64,000 bases of DNA from Oculina patagonica (taxonomy: Eukaryota): NCBI RefSeq assembly GCF_052425735.1, contig NC_135760.1, forward strand, positions 7,688,001 to 7,752,000. The letters are read 5' to 3'. Shown piece after piece: positions 18,318-58,836 of the stretch (the stretch's first letter is position 1; the number at the start of each line of letters is the position of its first letter). Under the pieces are notes generated by a model, which was given only the letters and a program-made list of their open reading frames with translations, was not told where the DNA came from and did not search any database. The position numbers were made by a program, and so were the translations under genes.

Positions 18318-19440
18318 TTAGCATGACAATGAAGCTACCTCTTGAAAGCAATTTTTTCCTTGTTTACGAAATTCGTCCATATTCAGTGCGACCTCCACTA
18401 ATAAATTGATACTGCTGAAAGCGTCTAATGTCTGTGCTTGTTCATTTGCCGGCATTTCTGGCTCGCTGTCCTGTTGCCCTTGCGAGGAAGGGCTTTCGCA
18501 ACCCACGTACTCAAACCGTCCCTGATAATCACATACAGGAAAATACGACTCTTGCTCGTGTCGATTAAAGTCTTTCTCAAACTGCCTCTCGGGGCTGGGC
18601 GATAAACTCCGTTGGTACAAGCTGTTCGGTGAAGGATTTTTGACATTCGCTCTTCGCGTGATGGTGTAATTGCTAGGATCTCGTCCCTCGCGACGAATCA
18701 TCTCGGGTAGTATTCGCCTTCGCGCATTTATAAACCAGTTGCATACTTGAAGCACAGATAGGTTGGCGGCTTTTGAAAGGTACTGCTTCTCCGCTTCGGA
18801 GGGGTAAGCGTTAAATCTGTGCTCCCACAGCCACAGTCGGAGAACGTTTACTGAATCTTTCGGAAGGTTGCCTCTTCTTCTCTTGGGCGGTGGGCTCGCG
18901 GTGACACGTGATGCGCGAAGTACCCTTTCGCTTTCCTCCCTCATATTTTCCACGTTTTCGTCCACTGCGGGAGAGAAAAAAATTATGGTTAGAAACGATT
19001 TAAAGGAAGGCACGAGTTTTCTACTGTCCAAAGTTAGAGAGGCGAGCGCCACGCGCGGATGTAAGCGCCATCATGTTAGTGTCGCATCAAGACATGTATT
19101 GATCTTATGAACTACCTCAACTGTCATCGACAGCGAACGAACAACAGTGAAATCACGAGACATGTCTCGTCTGGAACCCTACGTTCTCTATCTGCGCAAA
19201 ATACAGGAATCTTATTTGAGACAACTCAGAAGGTTTAGAAACAAAAAAGAGATGCAATCCCGACCGAGAATTTTCCCCCACAAACACGAAGTCAACACTG
19301 TCAAAAGCACAACTCATTCATTCAGACTTTGAGAGGCGTTGCGCATTTGGATGGCTTACTGCAAATGACATTCATTCAACCGGCTTCCGTAACTTACGGT
19401 AACGCTTGGTCCTTGATGCCTTGCCCGTATGGGGAGCCAT
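18318..19440 (-). CDS. TGIF: TGIF-class TALE homeobox transcriptional repressor, 2 coding exons
   Basis: Exon 19440-19398 ([14 protein letters not shown], donor C|GTAAGT) splices in frame to exon 18964-18318 (acceptor ttctctcccgcag). Homeodomain [33 protein letters not shown]...[25 protein letters not shown] has the TGIF-specific AYP loop and C-terminal extension. [12 protein letters not shown] resembles the TGIF Sin3-interaction motif. No PLDLS CtBP motif seen. Exon 1 is less certain than the homeobox exon. Confidence 0.93.
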
Positions 19441-21725: not shown

Positions 21726-39853
<18,128 letters not shown>

Positions 39854-42858: not shown

Positions 42859-44034
42859 TCAGTTCCTTTCAAGCGGCAAAGAAACGTCAGAACCTATTGA
42901 TTCCCTACTCTCTCCTTTACGCAGTAACTTTGCGATCTTTTTCCTTCCTGATTTTACGCGTCCTGCCGAAGTGATCGGCGTAGTTTTGCCGCTAAGAGGC
43001 GAGGAAGTGTTTTTCCTTGCTTTAGCAGCTTTTTGCAAGCCTTTGATTCTCGAGTTGATCTCGTTGATCTGAGCAAAGTTCATCTTGGTTTTTCCTTGTT
43101 CAGACTGATTTTCTTCAAGACCCTCTTCAGCAACTTCTTCCGCTAACGGAGGGAGAGTTTTCACCGGTTTCGGGACAATTTTGTAACCCTTGCGGTAAGA
43201 GCTTGTTGTCTGTTGATGAAATATTCCGTATAAACGCAGCAAATCCTCCTGCACTGGTGTACATGGCGTAAAAAAATCCGGCACTACAATCCTATCGGGC
43301 GCAGTAAAAGGACGATCTTTACTAGGTTTTTTCCTCTCGACTATTTTGGGAAGAGAAAAAGCATTCGTGGTCTTCGCACTTAGAGTCTTGCGTAATTTTC
43401 GCGACGATTTTTTATCCACTTTATGCTTATTCTCGACGGTATAAAACGATGAAATGACCCGCTTTCCATTTCGTAGCATTTCTTTTTTCCACTCTGCGGC
43501 GCTTTTAAACTGCTCCATATCTCGGACTTCCAACGAAGCCTTGCCTTCCTCGATTAAAACGTCCGCGCATTGTGCATGCCCTATTTTTAAAGCGTGTATA
43601 AGCGGCGTTTCGCCCTTGTTATTTGGTGTATCCACGCTTAAACCGTAGTGTTTTAATTTCTTAACAATCATCTTGACAATCGAGAGATCTCCCACGGTAA
43701 TTGCATGGAAGAGCGCTGTGTTTGCATCTTTGTCGACCGCATTTAAATTGTAGTCCACAAATTGTAGAAACAAAGTGACAAGTTTTATCCTTTTCAAAAT
43801 GCACGCGTAAGACAAAGCGGTCAGCCCTTGCTCATCCTGAAAATCGAGCGCTGCGCCGTTTTCTAAAAGCATCTTCGCCAAGCCAAAAGCTTTTTCTTCG
43901 TCGTCTAGGAAACAGACTTCCATGATCGGTGTCCTCTTGTTTTGGCCTCGCCAGTTGATATCAGAACCGGCCTCAATCAACAGACGAGCTTGTCTCCAAC
44001 GCTTGTTACGAATGGCTTGACTTAACGCCGTCAT
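42859..44034 (-). CDS. Single-exon ankyrin-repeat protein, ANKRD63/ANKRD34-like
   Basis: About 391 aa from ATG 44034. About five N-terminal ANK repeats (RTPIMEVC, GLTALSYAC, NTALFHAI, GETPLIHAL), with the KKLKHYGLSVDTPN segment typical of ANKRD63-like proteins, then a basic low-complexity tail. An upstream exon cannot be excluded. Confidence 0.85.
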   Translation of the reverse strand: MTALSQAIRNKRWRQARLLIEAGSDINWRGQNKRTPIMEVCFLDDEEKAFGLAKMLLENGAALDFQDEQGLTALSYACILKRIKLVTLFLQFVDYNLNAVDKDANTALFHAITVGDLSIVKMIVKKLKHYGLSVDTPNNKGETPLIHALKIGHAQCADVLIEEGKASLEVRDMEQFKSAAEWKKEMLRNGKRVISSFYTVENKHKVDKKSSRKLRKTLSAKTTNAFSLPKIVERKKPSKDRPFTAPDRIVVPDFFTPCTPVQEDLLRLYGIFHQQTTSSYRKGYKIVPKPVKTLPPLAEEVAEEGLEENQSEQGKTKMNFAQINEINSRIKGLQKAAKARKNTSSPLSGKTTPITSAGRVKSGRKKIAKLLRKGESRESIGSDVSLPLERN

Positions 44035-44838
44035 TTCACCCAAAAATACCTTTGTGAAGCGGATAATTTTTCCCTCTCTTTTTATTGACTAAAGAGTCAA
44101 ACTTTTCACTGTGGCGTGTGAATTAAATCGAAATTGTAATTACGCCGCAAAACGAAAACATGACTTTATTGATAACTACCGTGTACTTTGTTTCGACCAA
44201 TGGGATTACAAGTTGATAAAGCGAGACAGGTGATATCACAGTGTGAATTACTTATTTCCTTAGTAAGCCTGATTTACACCTGTAGGAGAAAATGGATTTA
44301 AAAAATAACAAGCAAGGGCGTATTTTTGGTGTTTTGATTAGTGAAATAATATTTTTTATTATGGTCACTGGAAACCAACGATCTAGTTGTTTTCCTTTAT
44401 GTTTCTTGGCGGGAGTTCCGGACTGTTATATTTCCAGTTGGATAAAAACCAATATTCTTCCCCAAAATATCAGACGTATTGACGCATGATGCAACTGGAA
44501 AATTTATTCTAAAAAAATAATGTTTTTCTTTCTTTCGATAGATTTGAACGAAAAAATAATCGGTTAATATAAATTCTGCCTCTCGTTTGAATGCTACAAA
44601 GGCATTGAAGTAAAACATAATTTATATTTATTAATTTATTGTTTATCAACATTTTCAAATTGAATTTTATTCCCACTGTTCCTAGACGATAATTACATGT
44701 ATAGCTAGCTACAAGCATCTATTATAATTAATAAGAGTTTTTTTTTATTTGAGGGATTTCTGCGTCATTGAATACATCAACTCACGCGATGGCTCGCTCG
44801 GTCGGGATGCCTGGAGAGGTACAAAAACTGCGGTCTCA

Positions 44839-46696: not shown

Positions 46697-49600
46697 CTAT
46701 GGTCTTTCTGGTCTTTCGTCCTAAAAACAGCAAAAGCAAATCAGAATTCGAGGAAATTCATTTTTAAATTGTAAAAAGGAAATTGTGTGCTCTGAATAAA
46801 TTATAACAGCATCGGTTACAAGCCGTAATTAATAGTTAATTAGTAAAGGCAGTTCATCAAATCTTAGGCAGTGTCATCTACCATACCGGTCCTTACTTGC
46901 CCCAAACCCCAACCCTAAAACACTTTTCCTCTCTGTGACTTGAGTTTGGGCATAAAAACGTTTAAGTCAAAGTTCGGCTAGAAAAGTAGGGTCTGCACAA
47001 CAGTACATCCAGCTTCAATAGACTACTAAGTTTTCTCGATTGTTATTAAAGCCGGGCCCACACGAGTAAAGGAAGCATGTACGTTCAAAATAATACGCAC
47101 ACGCAGGAATCTACGCTCGTTTTACAAGCTAGTGAGAACCTGGCCCGGACCCAGTAATATCGATTCTTCGAATAGTGTTAGAAGAATCTAATCGCTAAAG
47201 ACAAGATAATATTCTCTTGCATAAGAAAAAGGAGCGTGTCGATCATAAACATAATTATCTCGACAACAAGTAAGTCATGGGACGAACCAATTGCATTTGG
47301 GACACAAGCAGATCACCATCGTGGAAGAAGTCACGTGTGGTGGGACAAAAACGGCGATACCTTTGCAACGAGCACAAACTGAGAGGTGGTATTAAAATAC
47401 TAAAGCGTATTCCTTTTAATTATTAACAGGTTTAATTGTTAATTGTCTTTAAAACGACTGAGTTTCAGAGGTAGTAGCTTCTATCCCGTCCATTTTGTTT
47501 GTGTATAGCACTTCCTGCTACACAATTAGCAACTTAACAACAACAACAGTGACCTAAATAGTCGGCTGATTTTTTTTCTGACCTTGTCACTCGAAATAAA
47601 CTCGAAGCCAGTTGTATACTTTTAAATTAACTTATGCAGCTTTTTGACTTGAAGTTCTCAACAACGCGTCCTCAATAAAAAATGTTCCCCTAAGTTAAAC
47701 TTACCTCTCTTCCAAAGTCAAATGTCACGTTATCTCCAATCAGCACAAACGGTGCCCATTCTCTCACGTCAGAATAGCCATAACATCTCATCCACTTCAT
47801 GGCCTTGTGAAGAGATTCACTTGCACTTTCCCCACGAACAAGATGCTCATAGAAACGACGCATCAGCTGCTCTGTTGAACTGTCTTTTAACGCCCACAAT
47901 GCCACCAGTACTGAGCGTGCACCTGATCCTAAGAACGCTCGAGCGATTCCAACTACTCCCTCGGCTCTAATTTGTCCACGCCCACTGTGACAACAGCTTA
48001 GCACTACCAGTTTGGCTCGCAGTTGAACTTGTGAAATGTCATACATTGTCAATAGGTAATCTTCTTCTTGTGGAATCCTATTAGAAGAACGCACAGGAGA
48101 AAGGGCAATTTCTCCTCGTTCGGCATTACCATGTGCAGCAAAATGTATCAGACTCACTGAATGAATCATTTGAAGTATCGCCTGCTTGGTCGCGTGCTGT
48201 CCTAACAAAGGCTGAACGCCCAGCATTTCTCCAATCATCTCTGCTTCCTTTCTTGCATAAGGCAATGGCGTTATGTTTTCTGTTCGTCCTTTGTAAAGCA
48301 CCTCACCAACTTCAGGATCTCCCACTATAAGTGCACCACTCTGACTGTGATAGTCCGGGGGACTGTCTTGAATGAGCTCGAGAGTCGTCAAAGAAGGAAC
48401 GACGCGGATCCTGAAAGTCTCTGACAAATACTGTCCGTCTTCATCGCGTAACGCTGCAAATGGAACTTGGTACAAGGAGCGATCAGGAACAATGATAATT
48501 TCGGGCTCCTTAAGTAAGTCGGCCACAGGAGCGATGAGCATTTTGTAGAACAAAGGCTCGGGATCTTGGTTGTCTTCATCGTTATCCGCTACAAGACGCA
48601 AATTTGCGAGGCTCTCCTCCTGATAGGAATCAGGCTGAACCATATTCTAAAGATCGATCTTCACAATCCTCATCAGGTAAAATTACAAAGCTGCGAAAGC
48701 TTTTGGCAAAAAAATCATCCAAATCGTGAACTAATGCAGCGTGATCGTTGCTTTCATTTACTGTTTTTCTTCGAAAATGAATGTCTCCGCTCATTGTGAA
48801 AATCCACAAAAACACCCAATGAGCACGGTGGGAAATGTAAAGACAGGTGCAATTACTTTCTTTTTTCATGGCATTTTCAATGCCAATCCACGATTGCGGA
48901 TTAGCAGAGATTTGCCTTTCAATACAGTACTGAGCTGCCATCAAGTCTGCTAAGGCACTAGCTCTTCCCAGCTCTAGAACATAAAGAGCATTATTGGGAT
49001 TCTCAGAACAACAGAAGAATGCACTGAGCGTCTTGTATGGAAAATCGTTGAAGTCTGAAAAAGATATCTTAAATTGATCGTTGTTTTCAAGCAAACGTCG
49101 CAAATCTTCGCTTTTATTGATACTCAGTAGTAAATAGTCAAATGCTTCCGAGATCTTTTCTAGGGATAACTTCACCAATATCAAGTTACAGTACAAGTAA
49201 AACTCTAGGCCAGGGATTCCAATATCTTTACTAATTGAAAGTGCCTTCTCAAAATAACTTTCAGCTATGACTTGCTCACCAAGAATATAAAACATACTTG
49301 CAAGGTTTGCATAACTTTTTGCTTCTCCTGATCTATCACCAATTTCCATTTGAATCGCAATTGCTTTCTTGAGATGTTTTTTAGCTTGAACATATTCACC
49401 AAGATACAGAAACACTTTTCCTAGGTTAAAGTAATTTGCTGCTTTGCCTTTCCCAGATCTGTCGACAATTTTTATTGAGATCGCAAGTGCTTTCTTAAGA
49501 TGTTCTTTAGCTTGGACATATTCACCAAGAGATTGTAACAAAACTCCTAGATTTCGTAATTACGTGCTTGGCTTGCTCTGTCACCAATTTGCATTGAGAT

Positions 49601-50590
49601 CGCAACTGCTTTCTTAAGATATTCTTTAGCTTTGACATGTTCACCAAGAGACAGAAACACAGCTGCTAGATGTTCCAAATGTGCTGCTTCTCCTTTTCTG
49701 TCACCAGTTTCAATGCTGATCCCTAGTGCTATCTCTAGACATTCTTTAGCTTTGACAAAAACACCAAGAGACTGAAACACAGCCCCGAGGTTTCCATAAG
49801 AGGATGCTTTTGCTACTGTATAACCAATTTCCGTACTGATCACCAGTGCTTTCTCGTGACATTCTTTAGCTTTCTCATATTCACCAAGAGATCGAAACGC
49901 AGTTCCCAGGTGGTCGTAATTTGCTGCTTCAACCTTTCTGTCGCCAATTTCTATACTGATTGCAAGTGCTTTCTCGTGACATTCTATAGCCTGGGCATAT
50001 TCCGTAAGAGCCTGAAACACAGTTCCTATGTCTCCGTAACTTGTTGCTTCTTCTGCTCTGTCCCCAGTTTCCATATTGATTGAAAGTGCTTTCTGGAGAT
50101 ATTCTTTTGCATTGACATATTCACGGAGATGATAACACACATCTCCTAAACTTTTGTAAGCATCTCCTTCTCCTTTTCTGTCGCCCGTTTCTCTCATAAT
50201 AATGATCGCCTTCTTATAAAGTTCTTGTGCTTCTGCATATTTACGTTGCCCTTCACATATTTCTGCCAGTTGCATAGTGAGATTCCCTTCTTCAGCGGTT
50301 TCACCACACTCGCGGTAAATGAGAAGAAGTTCCCTGCCGTACTTAACAGCATTTGTGTAATCAGAGATCCGACAGTATGCACGGAAGATCACTCGATGGC
50401 TGGCAATCTTGAATAGTTTGACAAACCGTTCTCGTTTTTTAAGTTGTTCATTTTTTAGGAAAATCAAACATTCCTTACACAACGGGATGGCGTTTAAACC
50501 ACGACCGGTATTGAGAAGGAAAATAGCAATAAAGGTGCCTATATAGATGGCTGCTTTGGTGTCTAATATAACGTCCTCTGTGCTGTTCAT
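46697..50590 (-). pseudogene. TPR-CHAT protease paralog A, split by two 1-nt frameshifts
   Basis: ORFs 50590-49547, 49541-48630 and 48643-47690 are collinear with the intact paralog. 1-nt deletion near 49553 and 1-nt insertion near 48647. Phase-0 donor after 47705; terminal exon 46720-46697 (DERPERP*). Catalytic His (48133-48131) and Cys (47992-47990) retained. The indels could be assembly errors. Confidence 0.75.
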
Positions 50591-52671: not shown

Positions 52672-52925
52672 TACTCCCGGCATAGCTAATCGAACGTTCG
52701 AAAATCGAACTCAATCGAACTCAATCGAACTCAATCATGGATTGAATTCGATTGAGTTCGGCAATCGAACGAAATCGAACACTAGACTTTCAGTGAGTTC
52801 GATTTCCGAACAAATCGAACTCAATCGAACAAATCGAACCCAATCGAACTCAATCAATCAGATTGGGTTCGATTTAGTTCGGTAACCGAACTAATTCGAA
52901 CACAATTAAATGGATTGCGGTCGAT
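52672..52925. repeat. AATCGAACTC-type ~10-bp repeats in both orientations, probably a DNA-transposon subterminal array
   Basis: Many AATCGAAC / GTTCGATT units directly after a TACTCCCGGC end. Confidence 0.7.
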
Positions 52926-55510: not shown

Positions 55511-58500
55511 CTAAGGGATTTCTTCCTAAATAACAAAAAAGAAAAACAAAGAAAAACAAATTAGAATTTCAAGAATTTTATCGTAAACGGTATAGAAAAA
55601 AAAATTATTACTGACGGGATTTGTTTTAAAAGCCAATTTCAATTTCCCGTCAAAAATTATCCTTTTCGGTGAGTCAGGTTATTACATTTAGCGTTGATTC
55701 TCACTAGACTGTTATTTAATTGTGCAATTTTAATTTACATCAAGCAAATTTTAACTTCCTAACGTGCTCCTAACAGAAGTTTCTATAGTCTTAGTTAAAC
55801 TTACTTTTATTTTGCTAAAGTCAAATGTCACGTTATCTCCAATCAGCATAAACGGTGCCCAGTCGCAAACCTTGGGATAGCCGTTACATCTCATCCACTT
55901 CATGGCCTCGTGAAGAGATTTACTGACGCTATCCCCACGAACAAGGTGCTCGTAGAAACGACGCATAAGCTGCTCTGTTGCTATGTCTCCTAACGCCCAC
56001 AATGCCACCAGTACTGAACGTGCACCTGATCCCAAGAACGCGCGAGCGATTCCAACCACTCCCTCGGCTCTAATCTGTCCACGCCCACTGTGACAACAGC
56101 TAAGTACCACCAGTTTAGCCCGCAGCTGGACTTGTGAAATGTCAGACATCGTCAATAGGTACTCTTCCTCTTGTGGAGTCCTGTAAGTAGTTCTGACCGG
56201 GGAAAGGGCAATTTCTCCTCGTTCGGCATTACCATGTGCAGCAAAATGTATCAGACTCACTGAATGAATTATTTGAAGTACCGCCTGCTTCGTTGCGTGC
56301 TCTCCTAGCAAAGGCAGAACGCCCAGTAGCTGTCCAATCATCTCTGCTTCTTTTCTTGCATAAGGCAATGGCGTTATGTTCTCTGTTCGTCCCTTGTAAA
56401 GCACTCGACCGACTTCAGGATCTCCCACTATCAATGCGCCAGTCTGACTGTGATAGTCTGCAGGACTGTCCTGAATGAGCTTGAGAGTCGACAAAGAAGG
56501 AACGATGCGGATCCTGAAAGTCTCTGATAAATACTTCCCATCTTCATCGCGTAACGCTGCAAATGGAACTTGGTACAAGGAACGATCAGGAACAATGATG
56601 ATTTCGGGCTCCTTAAGTAAGTCGGCCACAGGAGCGATGAGCATTTTGTAGAATAAAGGTTCGGGATCTTGGTTGTCTTCATCGTTATCCTCTACAAGAC
56701 GCAAATTTGCGAGGCTCTCTTCCTGAGAAGATTTCGAATCAGGCTGAACCATATTTAAAGATCGATCCTCGCAATCCTCATCAGGTAAAATTGCAAAGCT
56801 GCGGAAGCTTTTGCCAAAAAAGGCATTCAAATCGCGAGGTAGTCCGGCGGAAGCATTGCTTTCATTTACCGTTTTACTTCGGAAATGAATGACTCCGCTT
56901 GTTGTGAGAATCCACAAAAACACATCTTGACCAACATAAGAAATGTATAGACAGGTACAGTTACTTTCTTTCTTCATAATATTTTCAATGCCAATCCACG
57001 ATTGCGGATTAGCAGAGATTTGTCTTCCAATACAGTACTGAGCTGCCATCAAGTCTGCTAAGGCTCTAGCCCTTTCCAGCTCTAGAACGTAAAGCGCATT
57101 GTTAGGATTCTCAGAAAAACAGAAGAATGCACTGAGCGTCTTGTATGGAAAATCGTGGAATTCTGAAAACGATATCTTAAATTGATCGTTGTTTTCAAGC
57201 AAACGTCGCAAATCTTCGCTTTTATTGATACTCAGTTGTAAATAGACAAATGCTTCAGAGATCTTTTCTTGGGATAACTTCATCAATATCAAGCTACAAT
57301 ACAAGTGAAACTCTACGTCAGTGATTCCAATATCTTTACTAATTGACAGTGCCTTTTGAAGATAACTTTCAGCTGTGACTTGTTCACCAAGAATACGAAA
57401 CACACTTCCAAGGTGTGCATAACTTTTTGCTTCACCTGATCTGTCACCAATTTCCGTTTGAATCGCAAGTGCTTTCTCGAGATTTTTTTTAGCTTGAACA
57501 TATTCACCAAGATACAGGGACACTTTTCCTAGGTTTACGTAATTTGCTGCTTTGCCTTTTCTAGATCCGTCGCCAATTTCTATTGAGATCGAAAGTGCTT
57601 TGTTAAGATGTTCTTTAGCTTGGACATATTCACCAAGATATAGGAACACAATTCCTAGTTCTCCGTAATTAAGTGCTTGTCTTGCTCTGTCACCAATTTT
57701 CATTGAGATCGCAAGTGCTTTCTTAAGATATTCTTTAGCTTTGACATGTTCACCAAGAGACTGAAACACAGTTCCTAGATTTCCCAAAAGTGCTTCTTCA
57801 CTTTTTTTGTCACCAATTTCCATGTAGATCGCTAGTGCTATCTCAAGACATTCCTTAGCTTTGACATAAACACCAAGACACTGAAACACAGCCCCGAGGT
57901 TTCCATAAGATGATGCTTTTACTTCTGTATAACCAATTTCCGTACTGATTGCAAGTGCTTTCTCGTGACATTCTTTAGCTTTCTCATATTCACCAAGTAA
58001 TCGATTCACAGTTCCCAGGTTATCGTAATTTGCTGCTTTTCCCTTTCTGTCGCCAATTTCTATACTGATTGCAAGTGCTTTCTCGTGACATTCCATAGCC
58101 TGGACATATTCCGTAAGAGCCTGAAACACAATTCCTAGGTCTCTGTAACTTGTTGCTTCTTCTGCTCTGTCACCAGTTTCCATACTGATTAAAAGTGCTT
58201 TCTCAGAATATTCTTTTGCATTGACATATTCACGGAGATAATAATACACAACTCCTAAATTTCTACAAACATTTCCTTCTCCTTTCTCTCTCATGATGCT
58301 GATGGCTCTGCTATAAATTTCTTTTGCTTCTGCATGTTGACATTGCCCTTCACATATTTTTGCACACGTGCGGTAAATGAGAAGAAGTTCCCTGCCGTAC
58401 TTTAGTGCATTTGTGTGATCAGAGATCTGACAATATGCCTTGAAGATCACTTGGAGGGTGGCAATCTTAAATAGTTTGACAAATTGTTCTTGTTTCTTCA

Positions 58501-58648
58501 GATCTTCATTATTCAGGAAAATCAGACATTCTTTACATAACTGGATGGCTTTTAGATCACGACCGGTATTGACAAGGAAAATAGCAACAAGATAGCCTAT
58601 GAAGATGGCCAAGTGGGCATATCTTATAACGTCCTCTGTGTTGTTCAT
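55511..58648 (-). CDS. TPR-repeat + CHAT (caspase/HetF-like, clan CD) protease, paralog B, intact; commonly auto-annotated TTC28-like
   Basis: Large coding exon from ATG 58648 (acceptor at 58677) to a phase-0 GTAAGT donor after 55805, then terminal exon 55525-55511 (EEIP*). About nine or ten 40-aa TPR units (GDRxxEAxxYxNLGxVFxxLGEYxKAKExxEKALAIS). CHAT motifs IIIVPDRSLYQVPFAAL, LPYARKEA, IHFAAHG, LVVLSCCHSG, ARAFLGSGARSVLVALW, WAPFMLIG. Confidence 0.92.
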
Positions 58649-58836
58649 GGCGTCCTCTTCGTTAAAGCCTGGCAAACTGATAATAAAGAATAAACATGAA
58701 CAGAATATAAAATCAAGTTAAATTAGTTATGTTGAATACGTAATGCGTATTATGACTGCTATAACTATGACTGTTCTTTCTTTGTTTTAGTTAGTTTTCG
58801 TCTTTGGACAAAAAGGAATCAGGATCAATCAGTACA

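Follow-up and report, generated by a model that had tools for sequence, protein, structure and literature searches.

The window, a stretch of 64,000 nt from the genome of Oculina patagonica, carries an intact TPR-CHAT gene (copy B) and its recently frame-broken tandem sister (copy A). We give a probability of about one half to the reading that the TPR arrays of the two copies were exchanged and that putative ligand-contacting residues then underwent a probably adaptive turnover on a conserved protease scaffold. In the scenario that we propose, the array of LGN/Pins-like 40-residue TPR units would have been exchanged or homogenised between the copies later than the rest of the gene, and amino-acid changes would since have accumulated mostly in helix A of the units, in both copies. 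The binding arm would set specificity and regulate or target the CHAT domain, as in separase, Craspase/Csx29 and DdvA.

Two tandem TPR-CHAT genes, one of them disrupted

The annotated first exon of B corresponds at 100% identity to the 952-aa 'hypothetical protein ACROYT_G009103 [Oculina patagonica]' (Table 1). In B, Pfam finds TPR_12 (E=3e-62), followed towards the C-terminus by one CHAT domain (PF13424/PF13176 plus PF12770), and the same domains are found across the three pieces of A. The protein relatives are 'TTC28-like' proteins of Orbicella, Pocillopora and Porites with 47-69% identity; apart from O. patagonica's own 100% match, no B orthologue above 69% identity was found in the protein collection. 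By domains and relatives, A and B thus belong to the coral TPR-CHAT (TTC28-like) family. The FAAHGN His814 and the LSCCHSG Cys860/861 are invariant in 35 aligned family members, and these putative catalytic motifs fit membership of the CHAT / clan CD cysteine proteases.

Apart from its two 1-nt frame breaks and the stop behind the first, copy A has no internal stops, and in the assembly it is apparently a recent pseudogene. Two stretches have been lost in B alone: 13 codons that make up helix A of the unit preceding U1, and the 4 codons of the TGDR loop. In the AlphaFold model of B, helices repeat every 40 residues, and DSSP on this AlphaFold2 model assigns unit positions 37-40 plus 1-13 to helix A (17 residues, in agreement with the initial annotation) and positions 17-34 to helix B. 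Tandem Repeats Finder detects the corresponding 120-nt period in B (57348-58240) and in A (49320-50124), and the interval 57360-58290, singled out by the initial annotation, matches B codons 129-438, i.e. TPR units U1-U8.

Table 1. Coordinates in the window of the features of copies A and B
Feature	Position	Strand	Detail
Copy B, intact TPR-CHAT ("TTC28-like") gene	55751..58675	minus	open frame, 974 codons
B annotated first-exon CDS	55805-58648	minus	Met at codon 10 to codon 957, then GTAAGT splice donor
B N-terminal helical domain	58277..58648	minus	codons 10-133
B TPR array, U1-U8 of 40 residues (U6 = 42)	57311..58276	minus	codons 134-455; region of the finding
B capping unit U9	57191..57310	minus	codons 456-495
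Tract of low A/B synonymous divergence	57116..58258	minus	B codons about 140-520
B CHAT domain	55835..56650	minus	codons 676-947; Pfam PF12770, E=9e-59
B caspase-like His, FAAHGN motif	56234-56236	minus	codon 814; putative catalytic, identical in A
B Cys-Cys, LSCCHSG motif	56093-56098	minus	codons 860-861; putative catalytic, identical in A
Copy A, tandem sister of B	47690..50590	minus	three ORFs; 88% DNA identity to B
A frame break 1	near 49555	minus	1-nt deletion (B codon 338), stop at 49547; alignment to B
A frame break 2	near 48647	minus	1-nt insertion (B codon 641); alignment to B
A TPR units U1-U8	49203..50167	minus	each orthologous to the matching B unit
A CHAT domain	47732..48547	minus	Pfam E=2e-60; catalytic motifs intact in own reading frame

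Amino-acid divergence is concentrated in helix A

The initial annotation had estimated that A and B differ at about 30% of helix-A positions, 15% of helix-B and turn positions and 11% of CHAT positions. These figures proved accurate, the measured values being 33.8% for helix A in its DSSP boundaries (47/139 residues, AlphaFold2 model), 14.0% for the rest of the array (26/186; Fisher p=2.8e-5) and 12% for the CHAT domain (32/272). Both helix-A examples that it quoted are present, namely GNVCRNLGVVYYY in B versus GDAYKSLGDVCYH in A, and EALLGNLGTVFQS in B versus AAHLEHLAAVFLS in A. With helix A taken as unit positions 1-14, 36 of 111 residues differ (32%) versus 37 of 210 (18%) at the remaining array positions (Fisher p=0.003; p=6e-6 against CHAT). 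Among the 40 cyclic 17-residue windows of the unit, that of helix A ranks first (34.8%) and helix-B windows rank lowest (12.5%). The density of changes in helix A is about 2.4 times that of helix B plus turns, and nearly all of them are single-base substitutions. Divergence in helix A is higher at second than at third codon positions (0.194 vs 0.101), the reverse of the CHAT domain (0.029 vs 0.195). The N-terminal 124 residues, which the initial annotation had omitted, diverge to a similar degree, at 35 positions (28%), but their dN/dS is 0.45-0.59.

Could these differences stem from short gene-conversion tracts, drawn from other units or paralogs, or from the alignment of non-orthologous units? 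Units are indeed shuffled in this family (paralog pairs whose C-terminal dS is 0.03 do not have equal numbers of units, and their TPR dS is 0.18), and a large exchange tract between A and B does exist. We nevertheless regard such an origin as very improbable, since orthologous units share 87-93% DNA identity versus 56-78% for any other unit pair, which makes the A-B unit orthology clear, and since the changes have almost no synonymous companions, which donors diverged by 22-44% would bring along. In the TPR array third paralogs reach at most 77%, in no region does one exceed the A-B identity, and no allelic haplotig or extra copy of A or B was found in the assembly. Repeat shuffling or gene conversion among the 120-nt units, for which the initial annotation had suggested a test, was accordingly discarded as the source of the helix-A differences, these being scattered single-base changes. 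Conversion from other units was rejected specifically (unit 6 reads CTA TAT in B and CAA TCT in A, one base per codon, and the CTG TAT of unit 7 is not matched), and there was no sign that a third paralog had converted either copy, each being the other's best match in every region.

A probable recent exchange tract and its synonymous clock

Third codon positions differ at 29 of 380 sites (7.6%) inside the tract of low synonymous divergence versus 111 of 563 (19.7%) outside it, a contrast reached in none of 200 permutations. The tract probably reflects an exchange between A and B, or a homogenisation of the repeat array, more recent than the rest of the gene. The idea that synonymous sites of TPR arrays are constrained in general was rejected, for 20 other paralog pairs have a TPR dS about equal to or above their C-terminal dS; among them, the pair L009/L012 alone resembles A/B. 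Since the low TPR dS is thus confined to a sharply bounded tract and does not extend to the family, the local clock would be the appropriate one. The first frameshift of A lies inside this young tract, and would therefore be later than the exchange.

On the local clock, dN/dS of helix A is 3.3 (p=0.009) or 2.2 (p=0.004) depending on the model, 1.8 with TPR-specific codon frequencies (p=0.04) and 1.6 by simple counting (p=0.07), the class having been noticed before it was tested and its significance ranging from 0.004 to 0.07 by method. The canonical concave positions 2, 5, 6, 9, 12 and 13 give 3.4 by maximum likelihood (p=0.066), and units U5-U6 hold 26.5 nonsynonymous versus 1.5 synonymous differences. 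The rest of the TPR array has a dN/dS of 0.64-0.98 on the same clock, and its equality with helix A is rejected (p=1e-5). The protease and the linker are under purifying selection, with dN/dS of 0.22-0.23 for CHAT and 0.25-0.32 for the linker. The helix-A ratio exceeds 1 only because synonymous divergence in the TPR tract is about 3-fold (3.4 times) below that of the rest of the gene; it rests on a local TPR dS of about 0.08, or some 20 synonymous differences, and requires that the TPR-local clock be neutral. On the gene-wide clock taken outside the tract, helix A falls to 0.63 and the rest of the array to about 0.27.

The initial annotation had inferred diversifying selection on a recognition surface coupled to a conserved effector, and had named a ratio at or below 1 at concave positions as evidence to the contrary. 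That inference holds in part: helix A reaches 1.6-3.3 and the concave positions 3.4 (p=0.066) on the local clock, so that a ratio at or below 1 is not clearly found, but whole helix A stands at 0.63 on the gene-wide clock, and many of the residues hit are conserved in the family or belong to the core. The helix-A bias hints at selection for new binding specificities, though it is no proof of it.

It is quite possible, if on balance doubtful in our view, that constraint was simply relaxed: exposed helix-A residues would be the least constrained of a TPR, A is a pseudogene, B is divergent and partly eroded, and a dN/dS above 1 would be noise on a small, mis-set denominator. The gene-wide ratios would then be the ordinary pattern, and simple counting, at p=0.07, agrees with this. 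Differences in the rest of the TPR array are equally spread over the three codon positions (13, 12 and 13), as under neutrality, and family-conserved or core residues (Y4, L7, G8, V10, F11 and N6) have been replaced in both copies. No other paralog is as far from the family consensus as B (62%), which also carries two in-frame deletions, and concave positions are the most variable ones in TPRs generally (PMC1261162). On the other hand, under neutrality the ratio cannot exceed 1, nor should helix classes differ on one clock, yet their equality is rejected and, in the likelihood tests, so is a helix-A ratio of 1 (0.004-0.04). The bounded extent of the low-dS tract also speaks for the local clock and against a mis-set denominator.

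Lineage of the changes and variants in other organisms

Six outgroup paralogs, together with the family profile, served to polarise the A/B changes. Thirteen helix-A changes fall on B, 13 on A, and 10 are ambiguous. The initial annotation had reasoned that changes confined to the decaying A lineage would speak against selection; with 13 on B, the changes are not confined to A. Indeed, the concentration is stronger in B (13 in helix A vs 7 elsewhere, binomial p=0.005) than in A (13 vs 15), and such a bias in the intact copy, open over 974 codons, argues against relaxation. Taken by itself, the B lineage has an estimated helix-A rate of only about 1.2-1.7 times the local neutral rate, which is not a significant excess.

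Unitig-sized Logan contigs from four public runs were aligned to B, and 40 of the 73 variants were listed; as the contig depths are mostly family cross-mapping and paralogs may be mis-mapped, this sample is a rough replicate only. Among the variants listed for three other organisms, helix A has 7 nonsynonymous to 1 synonymous versus 1:1 elsewhere in the array (Fisher p=0.02), and CHAT has 0:2, which repeats the helix-A bias without A being involved and again disfavours mere relaxation. Contigs of two other organisms span the two deletion sites of B with no indel reported, which likewise disfavours erosion of B. Variants also differ among the other organisms or samples at positions 2, 3, 9, 12 and 13. 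One run, X17, whose RNA label is a guess, has exact matches of 68-86 nt in CHAT.

The A/B pair within the coral TPR-CHAT family

A search of the window's own genome yielded 945 candidate TPR-CHAT places, and 346 units keep the 40-residue period exactly. In 28 paralogs (136 independent nearest-unit pairs), unit positions 2, 3, 9, 12, 38, 24 and 31 have pN/pS of 1.4-1.9. Together these seven fast positions have a held-out (cross-validated) dN/dS of 1.72 (1.43-2.00), as against 0.41 for the other 32 positions. The concave set defined a priori gives 1.16 (0.93-1.39) across the family, and the data-driven set 38, 2, 3, 9 and 12 gives 1.78; fast positions 24 and 31 sit on helix B. Positive selection on whole helix A family-wide was rejected (ratio 0.78, CI 0.66-0.93). 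In all 20 other paralog pairs the dN of helix A exceeds that of helix B, and helix-A dN/dS is 0.4-1.0 in 19 of them, as relaxed constraint would have it, the exception being L009/L012 with 1.31.

The changes between A and B are not enriched at these family fast sites (p=0.16), the exposed helix-A stripe is barely richer in them than other helix-A positions (24/55 vs 23/80, p=0.10), and they often hit residues conserved in the main family (G5, N6, G8, V10, F11 and S13). For this pair, remodelling or relaxation would thus fit the groove changes as well as the tuning of a recognition surface does. Such hits at conserved positions (G5, N6, S13 and F11) instead of fast sites would also be expected if the A/B lineage had changed its ligand or binding mode once, as a neofunctionalisation after duplication and not as ongoing receptor diversity. 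Many derived states are common to A and B relative to the outgroups, the two form an isolated pair on chromosome piece C3 (87% mutual identity) with next relatives at most 79% identical and located in the big C1 clusters, and their short array is fixed at eight units, where C1 arrays vary in unit number. We hold this single directional shift to be unlikely, given the independent changes in both copies after the last exchange and the variation among other organisms or samples at the positions listed above, which suggests ongoing turnover. With two copies only, adaptive turnover cannot be assigned to either a diversifying regime, in which many specificities are kept, or a one-off shift in a divergent lineage.

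Likeness to known repeat proteins and possible roles

The best solved match of the array is the TPR domain of LGN/GPSM2/Pins (6hc2, 3sf4, 4wne and 3ro2, with NuMA, Inscuteable or Frmpd peptides), both by sequence (E=2.6e-33) and by fold (Foldseek TM up to 0.75 by target, at 28-29% identity). In LGN, peptides run along the concave channel of the A helices, and position 9 binds the peptide backbone (PMC3438535); the concave positions of TPRs and the HOP contacts are likewise described (PMC1261162). By analogy with the solved LGN and HOP complexes, and using the DSSP boundaries and published TPR geometry, we infer that the exposed helix-A stripe (38, 2, 5, 6, 9, 12 and 13) lines the concave channel that holds an extended peptide, and the most likely reading of its divergence is therefore a fast, probably adaptive turnover of ligand-contacting residues. 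The coral units depart from LGN in detail. LGN has a Leu-Gly-Asn triplet whose Asn at 9 clamps the peptide backbone, whereas coral units have Asn-Leu-Gly-Thr, with the conserved Asn at position 6 (92%) and mostly Thr at position 9 (Thr 75%, Asn 6%). LGN moreover bears GoLoco motifs where coral B bears a protease.

In DdvA, Craspase TPR-CHAT/Csx29 and separase, a partner bound by the repeat arm controls the protease (PMC9729208, PMC11506125). The full-length model of B aligns with DdvA (8rw5, 8rot) and separase over about 1000 columns, at 11-14% identity and a whole-chain rmsd of 17-25 Å, and the CHAT sequence of B weakly matches the DdvA chain (E=0.001) with the His/Cys dyad conserved. B differs from bacterial DdvA and Craspase and from separase in lacking a CRISPR, anti-sigma or cohesin context.

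A second likeness is to fungal NOD-like receptors with TPR, ANK or WD repeats. Their repeats are near-identical and variable in number (Dyrka et al. 2014, PMC4986451), with positive selection at few positions per repeat, which in TPRs lie on the concave side (PMC4986451). This resemblance concerns the C1-cluster paralogs, with their homogeneous units and seven fast positions: in the most homogeneous C1 arrays (about ten genes), units are 84-88% identical to the consensus. The units of B are 50-72% identical to the family consensus and share 56-78% DNA identity with each other, in contrast to the internal identity above ~85% that serves as a criterion for the fungal repeats. The central NOD (NACHT or NB-ARC) domain of the fungal receptors is not found by Pfam in B, where the partner domain of the repeats is a protease.

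The expansion of the TPR-CHAT family in stony corals is already published. Passages of one study give 276-304 copies of TPR-CHAT ('TTC28-like') genes in Acropora and up to 362 in Pocillopora (PMC12314368), and passages of another describe an expansion in Montipora (PMC9145168). In these passages, the two papers treat copy number, haplotype variation and TPR length, and propose that diverse TPRs may widen the range of partners (PMC12314368, PMC9145168); the passages covered of PMC12314368 and PMC9145168 contained no analysis of the repeats by position or by dN/dS. A literature search yielded no functional data on any TPR-CHAT protein of corals. Compared with the published expansions, A and B stand apart from the big clusters as a small, divergent pair, with hundreds of paralogs in the same genome.

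On a broader scale, we tentatively put forward, as a somewhat unlikely reading, that coral TPR-CHAT proteins form a germline-diversified sensor-protease repertoire without a NOD, in which a TPR groove renewed by paralog exchange and positive selection gates a caspase-like protease. They would be an animal counterpart of the repeat-diversified fungal NLRs and of the Craspase- or DdvA-type TPR-CHAT switches, serving immunity, symbiont control or allorecognition, and A/B would represent one cycle: an exchange of the array, then rapid divergence of the groove in A and B alike, and finally the loss of one copy. Stony corals have hundreds of TPR-CHAT genes, and if groove residues are truly under positive selection next to a conserved protease, the family would be a concrete candidate for a system of recognition in corals, be it in immunity, symbiosis or the fusion of colonies. 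Fast positions 38, 2, 3, 9 and 12 (plus 24 and 31) are where specificity should be sought. The A/B pair itself is a modest gain: it is a clean example from nature, in which all eight units are unambiguously orthologous, the exchange tract is dated and one copy is intact.

Two tandem copies of a TPR-CHAT gene

Copy B, the intact TPR-CHAT ('TTC28-like') gene in this window of the stony coral Oculina patagonica, matches the annotated protein ACROYT_G009103 at 100%, its nearest relatives after that being coral 'tetratricopeptide repeat protein 28-like' proteins. Pfam assigns it a TPR_12-type array followed by a C-terminal CHAT domain (E=9e-59), and the AlphaFold2 model (mean pLDDT 75; 76-92 per 10-residue block in the array) predicts a helical domain at the N terminus, then the eight regular 40-residue TPR units (U1-U8) and a cap, and finally a partly disordered linker leading to a caspase-like fold. 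The best solved match of the repeat arm is to LGN/Pins TPR domains (phmmer E=2.6e-33; Foldseek TM <=0.75), and the whole chain aligns loosely with separase and with the TPR-CHAT anti-sigma factor DdvA. All 35 aligned family members share the predicted catalytic His (FAAHGN) and Cys (LSCCHSG). A GTAAGT splice donor directly follows codon 957 in both copies, and the gene is not strictly single-exon, as the annotated protein runs 4 residues into a further exon. A hydrophobic segment close to the N terminus (LAIFIGYLVAIFLV), kept in the family consensus, may form either a buried repeat helix or a membrane anchor; DdvA, a structural relative, is a transmembrane protein.

Copy A is 88% identical to B in DNA, and its frame is broken twice: at B codon 338 by a 1-nt deletion, with a stop straight after it, and at B codon 641 by a 1-nt insertion. 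It has no other internal stops. The duplicated segment comprises the gene and about 150 nt upstream, nothing more. TPR-CHAT paralogs number in the hundreds in this genome (945 candidate places in a first look, mostly in clusters on contig C1), among which A and B are mutual closest relatives (87%), the next paralog being <=79% identical. B alone lacks 4 codons (TGDR, a loop) and a further 13 (GETAEEGNLTMQL) that encode helix A of the degenerate unit preceding U1, all of which are retained in A and five outgroup paralogs. Since no indel is reported at these two sites in spanning contigs of two other organisms, B's deletions appear to be common to more than this assembly. Two further loci, G000:C1263:26487-29630 and G000:C7:26661002-26664145, have the same match statistics to B, which suggests that contig C1263 is a duplicate or haplotig of the C7 region.

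Features of the two copies and their neighbours (window positions)
Feature	Position	Strand	Remarks
Copy B	55751-58675	minus	974-codon open frame
Copy A	47690-50590	minus	same strand as B, 5 kb from it; three ORFs
Splice donor	55799-55804 (B); about 47700 (A)	minus	GTAAGT
Low-synonymous tract	57116-58258		codons about 140-520
Deletion sites of B	58286 and 58363 (B); 50189 and 50305 (A)		TGDR and GETAEEGNLTMQL
Hydrophobic stretch	58570-58615		B residues about 21-35 of the 974-codon frame
Short tandem repeats	52703-52855		10-nt units (AATCGAACTC), between A and B
Ankyrin-repeat ORF	42859-44043	minus	394 aa; Ank_2, E=1e-20
zf-RVT ORF	26471-27796	plus	441 aa
Homeobox ORF	18318-19052	minus	244 aa; TALE-class, Homeobox_KN, E=2e-17

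Divergence is concentrated in helix A

The initial annotation had claimed that A/B divergence is concentrated in the groove-lining helix A of the TPR units, and both of its example strings are found in the sequence. Unit orthology is unambiguous, as orthologous A/B units share 87-93% DNA identity versus 56-78% for every other unit pair. The concentration holds under two definitions of the helix, including DSSP boundaries set independently of the difference counts, and the helix-A window ranks top among all 40 cyclic 17-residue windows. This pattern is genuine and does not come from the hand alignment, unit mis-pairing or decay of A alone. The N-terminal domain, absent from the earlier account, is equally divergent in amino acids.

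Divergence between copies A and B by region
Region	Residues differing	dN/dS	Test
Helix A, unit positions 1-14	36/111 (32%)		
Rest of array, same definition	37/210 (18%)		Fisher p=0.003 vs helix A
Helix A, DSSP (positions 37-40 plus 1-13)	47/139 (33.8%)		
Rest of array, DSSP	26/186 (14.0%)		Fisher p=2.8e-5 vs helix A
CHAT	32/272 (12%)	0.22-0.23	Fisher p=6e-6 vs helix A (residues)
Linker		0.25-0.32	
N-terminal domain	28%	0.45-0.59	
TPR outside helix A		0.64-0.98	
Helix A, own clock		3.3	LRT vs 1, p=0.009
Helix A, array-wide shared clock		2.2	p=0.004
Helix A, TPR-specific codon frequencies		1.8	p=0.04
Helix A, simple counting		1.6	p=0.07

Polarised with six outgroup paralogs and the family profile, helix-A changes fall 13 on B and 13 on A (10 ambiguous), and those outside it 7 on B and 15 on A (14 ambiguous), which rules out that changes are restricted to the decaying copy. 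The concentration is sharper in intact B (13 vs 7; binomial p=0.005), while A is nearer uniform (13 vs 15; p=0.13). An independent sample comes from fragmentary contigs of three further organisms, which share about 98% identity with B. Among the variants listed, nonsynonymous-to-synonymous counts are 7:1 in helix A, 1:1 in the remainder of the array (Fisher p=0.02) and 0:2 in CHAT. Several of these variants reveal B-specific states limited to the reference lineage, such as Ile at U2 position 9. One directional shift of specificity seems an unlikely source of these changes.

The synonymous clock and a candidate exchange tract

A common dN/dS for helix A and the remaining array is rejected (p=1e-5). 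Within helix A, differences are twice as frequent at second as at third codon positions (0.194 vs 0.101; CHAT 0.029 vs 0.195). Synonymous sites diverge by about 0.08 in the array versus 0.28-0.31 elsewhere (20.5 differences at 238 sites vs 98 at 380, p=3e-8; four-fold sites 7/116 vs 22/119 in CHAT). A two-breakpoint scan delimits the low-synonymous tract, equalled in 0 of 200 permutations. Given that 20 other paralog pairs reveal no general synonymous deficit in TPR arrays, and that no third paralog was found intruding on A/B, the tract most plausibly reflects a later A/B exchange spanning the repeats, a reading resting on few sites; a conversion mosaic is very improbable. Such an exchange would make the local clock the right one for helix A, and A's first frameshift, located inside this young tract, would be younger than the exchange. 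Helix A exceeds 1 on the local clock (1.6-3.3, p 0.004-0.07) and drops to 0.63 on the clock from outside the tract.

We regard as likeliest, at a probability of about one half, that the repeat array was recently exchanged between A and B, that groove-lining residues would then have turned over fast, probably adaptively, and that the protease would have been maintained by purifying selection meanwhile. Relaxed constraint on the exposed helix of a divergent, partly eroded pair is a serious rival, at a probability of about one third, favoured by the fact that the excess above neutrality hangs on about 20 synonymous differences.

In a second paralog pair, L009/L012 (G000:C1:4.51 and 4.63 Mb), the TPR array has a dS of 0.089 versus 0.228 in the C-terminal half, with a helix-A dN/dS of 1.31; as this array is also much younger, array exchange between paralogs may be recurrent. 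L002/L021 (G000:C1:22.31 and 22.46 Mb) have near-identical C-terminal halves (dS 0.031), 9 vs 16 units and an aligned TPR dS of 0.18; judging from this pair, turnover is much quicker in repeat arrays than in the protease domain.

Fast positions of the TPR unit in the family

Across 28 paralogs of the O. patagonica genome, 346 units keep an exact 40-residue register (consensus ASSYGNLGTVFQSLGEYDKAKEYLEKALAIRIEIGDRAGE), and 136 independent nearest-unit pairs served for pN/pS. Helix A overall gives 0.78 (CI 0.66-0.93), the canonical concave set (2, 5, 6, 9, 12, 13) 1.16 (0.93-1.39), and seven fast positions 1.4-1.9, namely 2, 3, 9, 12 and 38 on the helix-A side and 24 and 31 in helix B (held-out value 1.72, 1.43-2.00, in split-sample tests); the remaining 32 positions give 0.41. 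The TPR concave face is formed by positions 2, 5, 9, 12 and 13 and residues just ahead of the next helix A, HOP contacts its ligands through positions 2, 5, 6, 9, 12 and 13 (PMC1261162), and the position-9 residue of LGN clamps its peptides (PMC3438535). The family thus does show a site-specific excess of amino-acid change at expected ligand-contact sites, closely resembling the TPRs of fungal NLRs (PMC4986451).

Only in part does the A/B pair conform to this. Its differences are not enriched at the family fast sites (17/56 vs 55/263, p=0.16), and within helix A the exposed stripe (38, 2, 5, 6, 9, 12, 13) is weakly richer (24/55 vs 23/80, p=0.10). Many changes replace family-conserved residues (G5, N6, S13) or fold-packing ones (Y4, L7, G8, V10, F11), and B is the paralog most distant from the consensus (62% vs 67-88% in others; framework positions 85%). 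Diversifying selection on a recognition surface, as initially proposed, gains from the local clock and loses from the outside clock and the fast-site comparison.

By analogy with LGN, HOP, separase, Craspase and DdvA, we infer a putative receptor with a groove ligand, a protease output and non-self recognition. Published accounts already cover the expansion of TPR-CHAT genes in corals and the suggestion that a diversity of TPRs broadens the partner range (PMC12314368, PMC9145168); new here are the quantified unit-by-unit comparison of one orthologous pair, the dated tract of putative A/B exchange and a cross-validated fast-position set of the TPR unit.

Elsewhere in the window, the ankyrin-repeat ORF lies just past copy A, the ORF with a zf-RVT domain is probably a retroelement fragment, and the homeobox ORF is TGIF-like.
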